64,000 nucleotides of DNA from the IMG/VR virus record IMGVR_UViG_3300047319_001872, positions 124,001 to 188,000 of that record. One strand, given 5' to 3'. A program made the position numbers and the translations under genes. Every line of letters begins with the position of its first letter. Position 1 is the first letter of the stretch. Positions 4,393-59,872 of the stretch are shown piece after piece. The notes beneath the pieces are model-generated. The model did no database searches. It was not told the origin of the DNA and was given only the letters and a program-made list of their open reading frames with translations.

Positions 4393-4752
4393 TTAGGCGC
4401 CTGCTTGTGCTTCGCCACCTTCGGACGACGGCGTGCCGTTGGCAGCGTGCGTCGTGCCGTCGGCCGGAACCGCGTAGCCGACTGCCGTCACGAACGGACC
4501 CGTGGCCGGGGGTGCTTCGCCTGCATCGACGAAGGGAACGTTGTTCGTCGAAAACGCGCCCGACGGGGTTTGCTTCGCTTGTGCCGGATTCTCGATCGCG
4601 ACATTCACGCGCGAGCCACCGGTCAGGACCTTGACGATCGTGCAAGGCAACGGATCGATGTTGGTGACGGTAGCACCCGTGCCGTCCAGACCCAGTGCGG
4701 GCGACGTGAATTGCGGGAAGTACTGAGCGGCGGTGTTATTTGCTGCAGGCAT
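4393..4752 (-). CDS. small beta-rich (SH3-like) protein, paralog of 4810-5271
   Basis: PLPCTIVKV...VNVAIENP...NNVPF; followed by a terminator. Confidence 0.65.
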   Translation of the reverse strand: MPAANNTAAQYFPQFTSPALGLDGTGATVTNIDPLPCTIVKVLTGGSRVNVAIENPAQAKQTPSGAFSTNNVPFVDAGEAPPATGPFVTAVGYAVPADGTTHAANGTPSSEGGEAQAGA

Positions 4753-9519: not shown

Positions 9520-9545
9520 GTTATATAGGTTTGAAATCTTTTTCA
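9520..9545 (-). promoter_or_regulatory. putative phage early promoter (CCTATATAAC, AT-rich upstream)
   Basis: Motif recurs at 507, 10028, 16459, 22568, 30597, 40702, 44241 and 59847, each upstream of a minus-strand operon; resembles the phiKZ early TATTAC element. Confidence 0.55.
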
Positions 9546-16431: not shown

Positions 16432-16553
16432 ACGGTTCTCCTGATTGATGACATAGCAGTAATATAGGTGCGTAATCTTTTTCGGTAAGTAAAAAAATAT
16501 TGGATCGTATGAAGTGTATTTTTTCGCTTCGATCACTACCGACAGGGGTTAGC

Positions 16554-17345
16554 ATGAGTAACAGTAAGTACAACCGTAAACTGAAGACGCCCGATGCGCG
16601 CGACTTCGTTTACCAAGGCCACAAGACCTTCGGTGCGGCACTGATTCCGCCCAAAGCGGATTTGACGCCTTACCTCGGCCCGGTCTTCGATCAAGATCAA
16701 CTCGGTAGCTGCACGGCCAACGCCTGCGCAGGCGCGCTTGAATACGAACAAAACATCCAGAACAACAACGACAACGCGGTGCAACTCTCGCGGCTGTTCC
16801 TGTACTGGAACGAGCGCAATCTCGAAGGCACGGTGGATCAGGATTCGGGCGGTCAGATTCGGGACGTGGTGAAGGCCGCCGCGCAATACGGTGCGCCGCT
16901 CGAAACCACCTGGCCGTACAACGAACAAGCGTTTCGTCAGAAGCCCTCGCTCGAAGCGTACAACGAAGGCCTGCAACATCGGGCGCTGCAGTACGAAGCA
17001 GTACCGCAAGACCTGACGGCATTCAAGCACGTGCTGGCAGTGCTCAATCGACCGATTCTGATCGGCATCATCGTGTACGATTCGTTCGAAGCACCGCAGA
17101 CGATCGCCTCGGGTGTGGTACCGATGCCGGGTCCGACTGAAACCTGCCAAGGCGGTCACGCCGTGCTTGCGGTAGGTTACGACGACAGCAAGCAAGCGAT
17201 TCTGGTCCGCAACTCGTGGAACACGATCTACCCGCCTGCCTGGCCGGGTTCGAACGAGCGCGGTTCATTCTGGCTGCCGTACGAGTACCTCATGAATCCG
17301 CAGCTCGCTGAAGACTTCTGGGTGATCACTCAGGTCGCTGGTTAA
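16554..17345 (+). CDS. papain-family (C1A) cysteine peptidase
   Basis: QDQLGSCTANA (catalytic Cys), GGHAVLAVGYDD (His), VRNSW (Asn). Confidence 0.9.
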   Translation: MSNSKYNRKLKTPDARDFVYQGHKTFGAALIPPKADLTPYLGPVFDQDQLGSCTANACAGALEYEQNIQNNNDNAVQLSRLFLYWNERNLEGTVDQDSGGQIRDVVKAAAQYGAPLETTWPYNEQAFRQKPSLEAYNEGLQHRALQYEAVPQDLTAFKHVLAVLNRPILIGIIVYDSFEAPQTIASGVVPMPGPTETCQGGHAVLAVGYDDSKQAILVRNSWNTIYPPAWPGSNERGSFWLPYEYLMNPQLAEDFWVITQVAG

Positions 17346-17873: not shown

Positions 17874-19172
17874 TTAGGCTGAGTGATTGGGATGCTGGCC
17901 GCCCGCTGCCGCGCGGTAACGCGGGTGTTGCCAACCAGCTTCCTTCGCGACACCGTGCACCTTGCCCAACACGCCTTCCGAGTACTCCGGAGCGACGACC
18001 AGACCTTCCAGCGCACGCCACTTGTTGTACAGATCGACCAAGAAGCGCTTGACCATATACCGGATCGCCATGTTGTGCTTATGCAGGTCCGTCTTCTCAG
18101 CGTGGCGAGGATCGTTCTTCAGGCGGTTCTTGTAATTGTTGTAGATCACCGCATACGGGCTCGGTTCGACGACTACCGTGTGACCCTTGGCGCGCAGATA
18201 GATGATGACAGCTTGGTCTTCGTCCATCTCCGCGTAGTCCTTCGGATCAAAGCCTTCTTCCTTGGCCAGTTCCAGTCGACGGACTGCGCCGACCTTCTTG
18301 CCATCCACGGTGGAGATGCCTGCGCGCAAGAACGAGGTACCCGCCACACCGATCAGCTTAGTCTTCAGGAACGGGTTGAAGGTGATCGAATCCCGCAACG
18401 CCTGCTCGCCCTCGCGATTGGTGTATTCCTTCTGCACCAAACAGAAGTCGCGCCGCGAACGACCAACTGCCTCGAAGGTCACCGGGTACTTGCCTTCGGC
18501 GAGCATCGGCAGATCGAAGTTCTTGCTGTCGGCGTACCAGGCGTCGATTTCTTGCCCGCGCACGGTCTGCTCACGACCCTTGTCGTCGACGTACTTGCCA
18601 ATATGCACCACGTCCAGCCCAGCGAGCTTCCACAGGCTTGACGGATACTCGGCCTTGGTGATGTCGATTTCGGAGACGATGATGCCCGCCAAAGCCGGAC
18701 CAATGCCGCGCACCCCGGACAAGAACTCTGTGTAGATCGGGATCTTCTTCAGAATCCGCTCCATGTCCTTGAAGTGGTGCTCTTCGTTCTTGAGCGTGTT
18801 CAGGTAGTTATCCACCAGCAGCAGTTCGCTGTAGTGCGTGATGAGCTCGTCGCCCTTGAATTTCTTCTCGGTGGGAAGCTTAGCGGTCATCGTTTCGATG
18901 GCTTCTGTGGTGTCGTCGTGGTGCTCGTCGATGATGCCGTCAGTGATACGACGATAGGACTTGCGCAACTGCTCGAGCAGGTTCTTTTCCTGCTTCTCGA
19001 GTTCGGCCTCGCTCATGCCGTCCTGACGCAGACCGAGCTTGGCTTTGAAGCTGGCGGTCACGCGGTTCCCCATCTGAATGCGCAGACCCTGCATGTCGTA
19101 GGCTGAGCGCACCATGGTGCGAATCACAGCGAGATTCGGGTTGTAGGTCGGGGCGATGATCGGGGTATTCAT
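17874..19172 (-). CDS. tasA: TasA-like RNA-binding protein (Nop/IS110 C-terminal domain, no RuvC or HNH)
   Basis: Coiled-coil N-terminus (VRSAYDMQGLRIQMGNR), GVRGIGPALAG.IVSEID, SSLWKLAGLD, FNPFLKTKL, YAVIYNNYKNRL, HKHNMAIRYMVKRFLVDLY..WRALEGL; adjacent to a dual-repeat 36-nt array. Confidence 0.8.
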   Translation of the reverse strand: MNTPIIAPTYNPNLAVIRTMVRSAYDMQGLRIQMGNRVTASFKAKLGLRQDGMSEAELEKQEKNLLEQLRKSYRRITDGIIDEHHDDTTEAIETMTAKLPTEKKFKGDELITHYSELLLVDNYLNTLKNEEHHFKDMERILKKIPIYTEFLSGVRGIGPALAGIIVSEIDITKAEYPSSLWKLAGLDVVHIGKYVDDKGREQTVRGQEIDAWYADSKNFDLPMLAEGKYPVTFEAVGRSRRDFCLVQKEYTNREGEQALRDSITFNPFLKTKLIGVAGTSFLRAGISTVDGKKVGAVRRLELAKEEGFDPKDYAEMDEDQAVIIYLRAKGHTVVVEPSPYAVIYNNYKNRLKNDPRHAEKTDLHKHNMAIRYMVKRFLVDLYNKWRALEGLVVAPEYSEGVLGKVHGVAKEAGWQHPRYRAAAGGQHPNHSA

Positions 19173-19200
19173 GATTCGGTTTCCTTGTTTCAATTGTAAG

Positions 19201-20458
19201 TGGTTGTATACGCGTTGGTGTTACACTAGCTGCTCTTGGGTGAGAGTCTACTGGTTTGATACACTACGTCGTCATGGATGAATACAGCTTACTGATGCAC
19301 TAGTTGTTCAGGGGTGACTGCGTTCTGTCGATCCACTATGCGAGATTGGGTGAATTTGCTACGATGATACACTGTGGGAATATGAGTGAATAAAGGTTGC
19401 TGATACATTTGACGCAATTGGGCGAATAAGACCGTTTGATACGCTGTTGTATGTTGGATGAAACTGTCCAACTGGTTCATTCTATCTGGATGGGTGCTTT
19501 TCTTACTTTGATACACTTTCTGGCTCTGGGTGACTGAAGTTTGGTGATGCACTAACCGGAATTGGGTGACTGTTTGACCGTGATGCGTTACTCTACACTG
19601 GGTGATGTTCCCCTCTGAGACACACTGCGAATTGATGGGGGTTTCAAGACTTTTGATACACTGAGCTATCTGGATGACTCATGCACGATGATACACTGAC
19701 CTCGCATGGGCGACAACAGTGCCTAGATACACTGATTACATCTGGTTGAATTACTTCACTTGGTACATTCTATCACAATGGGTGACTGGAGCAGATTGAT
19801 ACACTCGAGATCGTGGGTGACATTCGTCCTACCTTGATACGCTGTCTCTTTTTGGGAGACCTTCCCGAAGTGGCCCACTAAAATTTTTTGGGTGTCTGCG
19901 TATTTTTGATGCGGTCGATTACCTGGGTAACTTCCATGTTTTGACCCGTATTACTTAATTGGGTGACAACACCCTTTGACGCACTTCTCCTCCACGGGCG
20001 AAATTAAACCGATGGTACGATTTCGACTCTCTGGGGGACTATGTCAGTCTGACACACTAGACTACAATGGGGGACTTTTACTCATTGGTGCAATTATCCG
20101 GTTTGGGCGGCTAACAAAAACATGATGCATTTTCCGTCTCTCCTGGGTGTTTCAACGTGCCTGATGCGCAAGTGTAGTATGGGTGAATTCATCTTCTCTG
20201 GCACACATTTCCCCTATGGGTGTGATACCGATGTGATACATTCAACGGAGCTGGGTGAGTTTCTCCGAGCGATACGATAGTCTATGATGGGTGACTCGCC
20301 GCATTTGACCCACTGGCGTAGGGTGGATGGGGCTTGAGTTTTCTGATGCACTTCGACAACTGGGTGACTTGACTTCCTTGGTCAACTACGCGGGACTGGG
20401 TGACATCGATACTCTGATACACTAAATCGCTTGGGTGGCTGACTGTCCTTGATGCTTA
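19201..20458 (+). ncRNA. TIGR-like tandem interspaced guide RNA array, ~34 units of ~36 nt
   Basis: 35 copies of TGATACACT-like repeat (19219, 19257, 19293 ... 20415, 20450) alternate with ~34 TGGGTGACT-like repeats at mostly 18-nt spacing; spacers ~9 nt and non-repeating where read. Confidence 0.88.
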
Positions 20459-20462
20459 CTGC

Positions 20463-20492
20463 AGCCCGAGGCTTGCCTCGGGCTTTATGCCG
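20463..20492 (+). terminator. terminator closing the array on the plus strand
   Basis: AGCCCGAGGC-TT-GCCTCGGGCT followed by TTATGCCG on +; the other flank is not U-rich. Confidence 0.7.
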
Positions 20493-20500
20493 CACTGCTG

Positions 20501-20800
20501 TTAATGCACCGTATCGTTACCGCGATGCAGCACCGTCAGGTTCTCCTTCACCAGCTCGACCTTGGTCGTCGTCTTCGAGATGATGTCGTCGACATAGGCG
20601 AGCACTTCAGTAGCCTTGTCGATCAGGACCAGATCGTTCTCCGCCATGCCTTGGCCCGCTTCGTAGAACGGCTTCACGCGTGCGGTGATCTTGGTGATAC
20701 ACTGGCTCAGCTCGTCGAACGTCGCGAACGAATTCGGCGGGTTGTTTACAAACGCCACGAGTTCTTCACGCTCTTCGGGGGTGAGTTCAAAACGTTCCAT
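20501..20800 (-). CDS. helical hypothetical protein
   Basis: ORF track; AGGAG RBS. Confidence 0.65.
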   Translation of the reverse strand: MERFELTPEEREELVAFVNNPPNSFATFDELSQCITKITARVKPFYEAGQGMAENDLVLIDKATEVLAYVDDIISKTTTKVELVKENLTVLHRGNDTVH

Positions 20801-22009: not shown

Positions 22010-22510
22010 TCAATTGCTCGCAAGGAGCAGCGGAATATGTTTGGGTGGAAGAGATGCTACATGCACAGTCTGCTGCTTAGCTGCAAGAATCGTCTTTACC
22101 ACTTGACGGACCTTGATGGCGTACACCGCACGCTCTTTGGGCGTGTTGGAATGATAGCCCCCGACGGCAGCCCAGGTGTTGCCGTACCGGTTCATCGAGC
22201 GACGCAGCAACCAGGCTGCGACGTATATGTTCTTGCAGCTCTGCATCAAGTCCCGGCGGCCGATCTTGTACCTCTTCAGCTCCGGGAGATGAATCGAATT
22301 GACCTGCATCAGGCCAAAATCAACCGAGCCATTCTTGTTACGGTTTAATGCCTTCGGGTCGTTCTGACTTTCCACCACCGCAATCCCACGCAGGATTAGC
22401 GGGTTGACTTTCTGATACGACGCCGCGTCGGTAAAGCAGTCAGCTTCGCAAACCCCGGAAAACAACACGGCTAAAGCAGTGAGGGCGGCTAAGATTGTTA
22501 TTCTAACCAT
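22010..22510 (-). CDS. secreted lytic transglycosylase (SLT / IagB-like)
   Basis: Signal peptide; LRGIAVVES (catalytic Glu), DFGLMQVN, CKNIYVAAWLL, AVGGYHS. Confidence 0.88.
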   Translation of the reverse strand: MVRITILAALTALAVLFSGVCEADCFTDAASYQKVNPLILRGIAVVESQNDPKALNRNKNGSVDFGLMQVNSIHLPELKRYKIGRRDLMQSCKNIYVAAWLLRRSMNRYGNTWAAVGGYHSNTPKERAVYAIKVRQVVKTILAAKQQTVHVASLPPKHIPLLLASN

Positions 22511-22644
22511 CGTTTATTCTTCCTTGTAATTAGCGTTGATGAAGGTGCTTCCTGTAATGCTAAGTTAGTGATATAGGGCTGAAACTCGTTTGACGTCATA
22601 GAGCGAGGAAGCTCTCCTCCCCGCTTTTCACGATGCTTGTTGTT

Positions 22645-30553: not shown

Positions 30554-30689
30554 GATTCCTTTACGTCAGATTTAAGAGCTACACTACTCACCAGGGGTAA
30601 TATAGGTTTTAAATCGGATTCAGTATCAAAAAAAGAAAGGCTGTCACAAAGCGGAGCCCGAAGGCTCCGCTCATATGCCGTGGTTCAGC

Positions 30690-44240: not shown

Positions 44241-44265
44241 GTTATATAGGGCTGATTTTATCTGG
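44241..44265 (-). promoter_or_regulatory. putative early promoter for the multi-repeat DNA-binding gene
   Basis: CCTATATAAC with AT-rich upstream; the leader folds AGGAG..AAGG/CC..CTTCTCCT. Confidence 0.5.
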
Positions 44266-59846: not shown

Positions 59847-59872
59847 GTTATATAGGTCTGAGATTATCTTGG
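59847..59872 (-). promoter_or_regulatory. putative early promoter for the autotransporter gene
   Basis: CCTATATAAC, ~65 nt upstream of ATG 59782. Confidence 0.5.

Follow-up and report, generated by a model that had tools for sequence, protein, structure and literature searches.

The DNA considered here is a window of 64,000 nt (the whole stretch analysed, positions 124,001 to 188,000 of IMG/VR virus record IMGVR_UViG_3300047319_001872), which is contained at 100% identity in a 313,315-bp IMG/VR contig. It carries a gene, here called tasA, for a 432-amino-acid (aa) protein and, directly beside it, a long array of two short alternating repeats. Gene and array most probably represent a TIGR-TasA system of the dual-repeat kind, carried by a ~313-kb phage. 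The 34 units of the array, upstream of tasA, would be read from the minus strand and serve RNA-guided binding of DNA without cutting. The core of the locus is laid out as follows.

17874..19172, minus strand: tasA, 432 aa, coiled coil and Nop domain, without a nuclease domain
19180..19186, minus strand: ribosome-binding site of tasA, AAGGAAA, 7 nt 5' of the ATG at 19172, kept in the related loci L003 and L004
19201..20458, minus strand: dual-repeat TIGR array, 35 edge and 35 loop repeats
19224..19549, minus strand: tasA-proximal part of the array, units 26-34, the main turnover hot spot
20463..20484, no strand assigned: GC-rich hairpin with a 9-bp stem, between the stop codon of the upstream open reading frame (ORF) and the first edge repeat

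The start codon of tasA at 19172 is identical in L003 and L004, and the hairpin is kept in both.

The array is defined by its period. Autocorrelation of 19201-20458 reaches 0.403 at lag 36, with 0.357 and 0.354 at lags 72 and 108, and the best value at lags of 10-60 never exceeded 0.312 in 1000 shuffles. A chain search by dynamic programming finds 70 alternating repeats, 35 of TGATACACT and 35 of TGGGTGACT in + strand notation, at a usual spacing of 18 nt that slips in places to 17, 19, 20 or 21 nt. Information content is high at exactly nine positions per repeat and close to zero in the spacers, 55 of 70 of which are 9 nt long. The first-pass annotation, made from the sequence, had proposed the 36-nt period and the ~18-nt alternation with the same slips, and both are confirmed. 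Its counts of 35 and ~34 copies hold for one repeat type and fall short for the other, which also numbers 35; its pair of alternating consensus repeats is real, but the repeats of the RNA would be their reverse complements. On the minus strand the consensus is AGTGTATCA for the edge repeat and AGTCACCCA for the loop repeat, the functional repeats in RNA sense being AGUGUAUCA (edge) and AGUCACCCA (loop). Complete units, 34 in number, run from 20454 down to 19224 on this strand and are followed by one final unit without a 3' edge repeat. Canonical units, with spacers of 9+9 nt, make up 20 of the 34, so that the ~34 specificities claimed for the phage match the number of complete units but are an upper bound. 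Repeats carry up to five mismatches, and irregular units and degenerate repeats are concentrated in the tasA-distal half, where 6 of 18 units are canonical; in units 19-33 the figure is 14 of 15 (Fisher p = 0.0009).

The periodicity and chain scripts were written for the detection of the array; Tandem Repeats Finder did not report it, because its units are too divergent, and no Rfam family matches it. A CRISPR-Cas identity was considered and is ruled out by the two alternating 9-nt repeats, the 9-nt spacers and the absence of cas-like neighbours. Two ORFs lie wholly within the array (19289-19552, minus strand, 87 aa; 20122-20280, plus strand, 52 aa) and are artefacts of the repeats, not genes. 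The spacers on the RNA strand are purine-rich and poor in C (A 0.31, G 0.27, T 0.23 and C 0.19 in the window), and their GC content is ~10 points below that of the flanks (0.46 versus 0.555 in the window, and lower in most of the loci L001-L031). This bias looks like a constraint at the RNA level.

The 432-aa protein has no significant match in Pfam and contains neither an HNH nor a RuvC/DEDD domain. Its relationship is apparent from comparison with proteins of known structure: a phmmer search of the PDB recovers TasR (9mty, E 6e-9) and TasH (21kl, E 6.6e-6). An AlphaFold (AF2) model built on 70 homologs (pLDDT 90.9, pTM 0.85) opens directly with coiled-coil helices (residues 12-46, 55-84 and 114-141), which are followed by an alpha/beta domain. 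When this model is compared with the PDB by Foldseek, every one of the top ten matches is a TasH or TasR complex (probability 1.0, E 1.7e-6 to 9e-5), and the archaeal Nop5 and IS621 recombinase structures appear only at E ~0.5 (0.62 for IS621). The first-pass annotation had described a protein that begins at the coiled coil without RuvC or HNH, and had called for a structural comparison with Nop proteins and TasA; the model and its fold matches agree with that description. Among the structures of a viral library, the model comes closest to a 287-aa protein labelled 'IS110-family' from an uncultured phage (E 8.8e-25, TMt 0.89), a compact TasA-like protein. The product of tasA itself falls into a PHROG family labelled 'transposase', and an identity as an IS110-family transposase was rejected, as there is no DEDD domain, the match to PF02371 (E 0.098) lies below the cut-off, IS621 is matched only at E 0.62, and an array is found instead of a bridge RNA.

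Finer features of the protein also point to the Tas family. With FpTasA of Flavonifractor plautii, as given in the published supplement, it has in common the motifs YD.QKLRI, G.GP, SS.W..AGLDV, NPFLKTKL, RY.VK.FL.D, WR.LEGL and PY....LGH. SpTasH processes its own pre-tigRNA with Y289 and H296, and a C-terminal Y/H loop marks the dual-repeat systems. In the window protein Y397 aligns with Y289 of SpTasH, and H406, which follows a conserved LG, lies two residues beyond the H296 column; Y397, L402 and H406 are nearly invariant in the 70 homologs. Y397 and H406 thus form a putative dyad for the processing of pre-tigRNA. Three insertions (residues 85-97, 193-234 and 287-335) set this clade apart from compact homologs, and residues 413-432 form a disordered tail. 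The two insertions within the Nop domain, one beta-rich (193-234) and one made of three short helices and a strand (287-335), are absent from the compact homologs of ~285-310 aa. Large insertions have been described in published work mainly for stem-loop Tas proteins.

The strand from which the array is transcribed has to be settled from the repeats. RNA from the + strand was assumed at first, from the run of T that follows the hairpin, and was dropped once orientation across the family, comparison with FpTIGR and the wobble pairs had been analysed. All the related arrays that were parsed, those upstream of tas as well as those downstream, have repeats whose last three letters on the tas-sense strand are CCA or TCA; AGAAAACCA with AACGAGTCA is a typical pair. 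For two experimentally validated systems Table S1 of Faure et al. (Science 2025; PMC12045711) gives the repeats in RNA sense: AGTGTACC and AGTAACCC for FpTIGR, the array of FpTasA, and AAGCGAGCCA and AAGACAACCA for the array of SpTasH. The minus-strand repeats of the window, AGTGTATCA and AGTCACCCA, nearly match those of FpTIGR, and a pattern AG....CCA is common to FpTIGR, SpTIGR and the window. The program TIGRFinder describes a repeat as a box D of 2 nt, a gap of 4 nt and a box C of 3 nt, and recognises the edge repeat by complementary terminal bases of the gap. The minus-strand repeats fit this layout as AG|UGUA|UCA (edge) and AG|UCAC|CCA (loop); box D is AG in the window as against UG in TasR arrays.

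The terminal gap bases do not pair inside one repeat; the pairing is found between successive edge repeats instead. In the window, gap position 4 of one edge repeat is paired with gap position 1 of the next one in 33 of 34 cases, and across five arrays the same pair is of Watson-Crick type in 138 of 144 unique cases (113 A-U and 25 G-C). The mutual information between these two positions is 0.52 bits, compared with 0.12 or less for any other pair of positions; the closing helix is paired at 96.3% on 94 canonical units, and none of 500 shuffles reaches the covariation observed. Pairing between successive edge repeats, which extends to the 28 arrays compared, is as expected if they supply the two ends of a processed 36-nt tigRNA. 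A second closing pair joins the first nucleotide of box C to the second of box D, and, counted over 28 arrays with 506 unique edge pairs, it is U·G in 148, U-A in 145, C-G in 136, C·A in 5 and A·C in 4. On the opposite strand each U·G wobble would turn into an A·C mismatch, so this second pair decides between the strands. From the orientation across the family, the comparison with FpTIGR and SpTIGR, the TIGRFinder layout, the covariation of edge repeats and the U·G wobbles, we conclude that the RNA would be read from the minus strand, as is tasA, with the array directly upstream of the gene.

The family to which tasA belongs is large, comprising 1954 clusters at 50% identity (E 1e-3 or better), many of them on contigs of 200-285 kb. 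A 36-nt-periodic array adjoins the gene in 28 of 30 related viral loci from IMG/VR. Sister arrays have 40 units in L003 (93% protein identity), 45 in L004 (96%) and 25 in L005 (79%). The window locus (L001) differs from L002, which comes from a different sample, at 2 of 1258 array positions. Comparison with the more distant sisters allows the array to be followed unit by unit: of the 34 units, 22 have collinear matches in L004 and 21 in L003, and the flanks are ~80-89% identical. The regular, tasA-proximal units 26-34 are nearly all different in each of L003 and L004, and a second replaced block comprises units 4-6. Within matched units the spacers are 96.5% (L004) and 95.1% (L003) identical and the repeats 91% and 89%, values that are biased upward by the threshold used for matching units. 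By comparison, third codon positions of tasA are 73.5% (L004) and 74.8% (L003) identical, with positions 1 and 2 at 97-99%; tasA itself is under strong constraint. Both spacers are fully identical in 13 units (L004) and 9 units (L003), where the neutral expectation for 18 nt is ~0.4%.

Shared spacers thus appear to be under purifying selection, and spacers are either left intact or swapped as whole units. This pattern argues for selection on specific, stable targets together with a cassette-like turnover that is mostly tasA-proximal. A polar mechanism of growth can be put forward as a hypothesis.

Only one homolog was found in a cultured phage, ORF034 of Ralstonia phage phiRSL1 (L031; NC_010811.2, 13180-15640), which is 28% identical and annotated as 'transposase' in GenBank. 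It is followed by an unannotated gap of 1.4 kb holding ~37 dual-repeat units (AGTCACCCA and AGTG.GCC) on the strand of the gene, and this array sits within a block of genes that are all on the plus strand. The ORF034 locus appears, from its sequence, to be an unrecognised TIGR-TasA system of a jumbo phage that is tractable. Table S1 of Faure et al. lists another Tas from metagenome 3300047319, the source of the window. Other periodic DNA lies near tas genes in L010 (3943-4554 and 7219-7884) and L007 (1837-2556), with 36-nt units of GGTAATGCT.AGGTAT type and a 33-nt repeat rich in GCTGCTGC; it is unlike TIGR arrays and may represent coding repeats.

The search for targets of the spacers gave a uniformly negative result. 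The target strand was taken to consist of spacer A and then the reverse complement of spacer B, as this is the only geometry that gives the reported 3' overhangs, and both geometries were searched throughout. In the 64-kb window, no site with three or fewer mismatches in the correct register exists for the 20 canonical targets in both geometries and registers. When 466 units from 28 arrays were compared with 330 kb of window and related loci, matches were at chance level (2 at one mismatch, ~0.5 expected; 12 at two or fewer, ~13 expected). Units of phiRSL1 have no site at one or fewer mismatches in their own complete 231-kb genome, and the counts at three or fewer equal chance. Exact scanning of the entire viral collection, with the full contig and its sisters in it, produced no match for units 19, 21 and 23; unit 25 gave three, all in a 747-aa ORF of the same unrelated virus of ~6 kb and within chance, and no self match. 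Unit 19 was further compared with 185,579 species genomes and yielded four scattered matches, in Paenibacillus and in archaeal metagenome-assembled genomes, again at chance level. The first-pass annotation had proposed spacer-pair matches above a shuffled control as a check on targeting; in the searches of the window, related loci, viral collection and, for unit 19, species genomes, matches did not exceed chance. An 18-nt target carries too little information for a blind database search.

One locus allowed the geometry to be looked at directly. In Escherichia coli the wcaD gene (K-12, L032, 15702-15719; BL21(DE3), L034), which is a published off-target of TaTasR tigRNA1, contains a perfect complement of TTGCCTTAG, which is spacer B in the first unit of TaTIGR. 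The 9 nt beside it agree at 6 of 9 positions only with TCATATATA, the spacer of the next unit, on the side opposite to that predicted from the 3' overhangs, so that this check of geometry is ambiguous.

Signals for transcription were sought around the locus, and the neighbouring features are these.

16500-17345, plus strand: homolog of papain-family cysteine proteases (PF00112, E 2e-13)
20501..20800, minus strand: 99-aa ORF without a Pfam match, the last gene ahead of the array in the presumed operon
22010-22510, minus strand: gene for an SLT lytic transglycosylase (PF01464, E 3e-17)
22568..22577, minus strand: nearest upstream copy of a candidate promoter motif, CCTATATNAC, and possible start of the operon
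9520-9529, 16459-16468, 22568-22577, 30597-30606, 44241-44250 and 59847-59856, minus strand: exact copies of CCTATATNAC

No sigma-70 promoter was found by a terminator and promoter scan that also missed the hairpin at 20463-20484. The window has six exact copies of the motif CCTATATNAC, each of them on the minus strand, and allowing one mismatch there are 9 matches where 4.2 are expected, a number reached by 2 of 100 shuffles. Four of the six exact copies are followed, ~40-60 nt downstream, by a Shine-Dalgarno-like sequence and an ATG, and the copies share a conserved A/T-rich stretch upstream. The motif is probably a phage-specific promoter, and a minus-strand unit starting from ~22577 may comprise the SLT gene, four small ORFs, the hairpin, the array and, as its distal part, tasA. 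A related motif, CATATATAACT, lies directly upstream of arrays on the sense strand in L005 and L006. The form CATATATAACT(T)ACT is found at ~3985-4005 in L005 and at ~4430-4450 and ~4950-4975 in L006, the second copy in L006 being located between a terminator and tas. This suggests that in these more distant relatives the array and tas may each have their own promoter.

Apart from the PF00112 and PF01464 genes, the neighbours of the locus have no Pfam match; among ten neighbouring ORFs there is no match to a Pfam nuclease or ParB, and none resembles a cas gene. The region has no megablast match among cultured phages. The large proteins of the window match PHROG families and structural proteins of phages of ~350 kb, and the phage is distantly related to the jumbo phages (~350 kb) of the PBECO4, XaC1 and BF types, with ~30% identity over a protein of 1105 aa whose relatives are annotated as structural or tail proteins in some records of these types. 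Assignment to a jumbo phage, as made at the outset, is borne out by these matches and by the 313,315-bp contig.

Drawing on published Tas biochemistry, a sequence of events can be proposed for this system. The array would be co-transcribed with tasA, probably from a phage promoter near 22577, and a TasA dimer would bind the box C/D motifs of the transcript. The C-terminal Tyr/His dyad (Y397/H406) would cut inside the edge repeats to release 36-nt tigRNAs, and the ends of each unit would be closed by the two base pairs that covary between successive edge repeats. A target site would then be bound, bent and unwound, which would block transcription or replication without a cut, since this TasA has no nuclease. 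The targets would most likely be conserved sequences outside the phage, on the host chromosome or in competing mobile elements, given that the shared spacers appear to be under selection and that no target was found in the phage DNA searched.

Several observations weigh against this account or some part of it. The hairpin at 20463-20484 is followed by a run of T on the + strand, as in a terminator for a + strand transcript. On the minus strand the array has no terminator at its end, which is formed by a loop-type repeat and then the ribosome-binding site of tasA, and the sole hairpin lies 5' of the array. Published arrays typically, although not by definition, end with a truncated edge repeat and a rho-independent terminator. 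The promoter assignment has the recurrence of CCTATATNAC as its sole basis. Could the same system then be transcribed from the + strand, divergently from tasA, with the hairpin as its end? The sequence TTTAT follows the hairpin on the + strand and there is no U-run on the minus strand; both repeats begin with UG on the + strand, which is box D of the TasR arrays; and the wobbles in the gap-closing pair slightly favour the + strand (4 T·G versus 1 C·A). Yet the AG....CCA of FpTIGR and SpTIGR in RNA sense is that of the minus strand of the window, the parsed relatives have the same repeat orientation relative to tas, with most arrays downstream on the same strand, and only in the minus-strand 2/4/3 layout do the covarying positions fall at the ends of the 4-nt gap. 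The 148 U·G pairs between box C and box D would become A·C mismatches, and between tasA and the array there is neither room nor a motif for a + strand promoter. Transcription from the + strand is therefore very improbable. The hairpin could be a leaky or bidirectional terminator, or a structure marking the 5' boundary of the pre-tigRNA.

The remaining difficulties concern function. No target was found in any search run, 14 of 34 units have spacers of 8, 10, 11 or 12 nt, and the pair expected between box D and box C of the loop repeat is formed in only 47.9% of units, because the G of box D is poorly conserved in that repeat. As so many units are irregular and many repeats degenerate, part of the array may be inactive. 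These same facts, with the mismatched repeats and the scarcity of canonical units distally, could be read as those of a mostly decaying relic with few functional guides and little present function. That is quite unlikely, as the covariation of closing pairs is nearly perfect even with degenerate repeats included, conservation of shared spacers far exceeds that of synonymous sites in tasA, codon positions 1+2 of the gene stand at 97-99% against ~74% at position 3, and long arrays occur in all four sister phages and in phiRSL1. An active system might instead regulate the genes of the phage itself, for example in temporal control. Spacers that look selected and stable (2 of 1258 nt between L001 and L002) would suit fixed targets of this kind, and the locus may lie in an ordinary phage operon behind a promoter motif of phage type. 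Self-regulation is nonetheless disfavoured by the target searches, namely by the lack of any site at three or fewer mismatches in the window, of exact self matches for units 19, 21, 23 and 25 in a collection that includes the 313-kb contig, and of any site at one or fewer mismatches in the genome of phiRSL1; it is an unlikely role. A last reading, in which the protein is what remains of an IS110-family transposase and the repeats are satellite or coding DNA with no connection to it, is so improbable as to be negligible. The labels of the PHROG family and of the phiRSL1 homolog in GenBank and the weak PF02371 match speak for it. Against it, the protein has no DEDD/RuvC domain, IS621 is matched at E 0.62 as against ~1e-6 for Tas structures, the array accompanies the gene in 28 of 30 loci and shows covariation of the type seen in RNA, and the 87-aa ORF inside the array (19289-19552) runs through the repeats.

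A minus-strand dual-repeat TIGR-TasA system therefore accounts best for the locus. At the level of sequence it shows a Tas fold, no nuclease, a 36-nt dual-repeat array, the box layout, covarying closing pairs and a Y/H dyad. These, with the repeats close to those of FpTIGR and the association of array and gene among relatives, uphold the original suggestion of a TIGR-Tas-like system.

The family and the mechanism of TasA have already been published, and no new principle comes with this locus. The description of TIGR-Tas systems dates from 2025 (Faure et al., Science 2025; PMC12045711). A published catalogue covers 4,126 arrays of the dual-repeat kind, which hold 65,635 tigRNAs, ~16 per array. 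TasA binds 36-nt tigRNAs. For MbTasA, reversible RNA-guided repression of transcription and DNA binding have been shown experimentally (Xu et al. 2026 preprint 10.64898/2026.09.09.750476), and for PlTasA binding to target DNA has been shown and structures solved (preprint 10.64898/2026.08.11.744272). Both are nuclease-less like the window protein and act by the RNA-guided binding of DNA proposed here, although neither is a jumbo-phage protein. PlTasA works with stem-loop tigRNAs, and its clade is without the Y/H loop, whereas the window has a dual-repeat array with the dyad. By analogy with these proteins, we infer that the window TasA may act in RNA-guided repression.

The closest system in design is FpTIGR-TasA, which likewise has a solo coiled-coil and Nop protein, a dual-repeat array of 36-nt period, 9-nt spacers and nearly the same repeats. 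FpTasA is roughly 300 aa long compared with 432 aa here, without the insertions at 85-97, 193-234 and 287-335 and the longer tail, and the His of its dyad follows the Tyr by 7 residues rather than 9. Its array lies downstream of the gene in a Firmicutes genome, while that of the window lies upstream, has 34 units and belongs to a jumbo phage. The best structural matches, SpTasH of Salicola phage CGphi29 and TaTasR (PDB 9w03, 9w04 and 9mty), have in common with the window the dual-repeat 36-nt tigRNA, box C/D anchoring and the closing pair of edge repeats, but they are DNA-cutting proteins with an HNH or RuvC nuclease at the N-terminus, and the window protein has neither domain. IS110/IS621 recombinases and the archaeal Nop5 box C/D small ribonucleoprotein are alike in their Nop-type RNA-binding domain and tandem-guide logic; the window locus lacks a DEDD domain, partners such as fibrillarin or L7Ae, a single bridge RNA and K-turns. 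The nuclease-free CRISPR systems of types IV and V-M offer a functional analogy, being guide arrays of mobile elements that interfere by binding and not by cutting. Their proteins are unrelated, their repeats are single and of 25-36 nt, and their spacers are of ~30 nt, read one strand and depend on a PAM; in the window array the shared spacers are more conserved than the repeats. From the reference systems the locus differs in degree, in its longer arrays, its array upstream in the operon, the Nop-domain insertions in a dual-repeat TasA and its jumbo-phage host.

The published TIGR-Tas papers pose the natural targets, the roles of the systems (especially of nuclease-less TasA) and the gain of units as open questions, and it is on these that the present locus bears. 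Four sister jumbo phages provide long arrays that can be compared unit by unit, with turnover concentrated at one end. They belong with a clade of dual-repeat TasA proteins that have sizeable insertions in the Nop domain. The U·G wobbles of the closing pair offer a clean way to orient TIGR arrays from sequence alone. The cultured relative phiRSL1 provides a genetically testable entry point for function. A tentative and rather doubtful proposal is that of multiplexed host takeover, in which insertion-bearing TasA proteins with arrays of 25-45 units, and hence dozens of long-lived guides maintained by selection, would silence conserved loci of the host or of competitors, and units would be added or exchanged mainly at the tasA-proximal end. 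If true, this would be the first natural function of a TasA and the first clue to how TIGR units are acquired.

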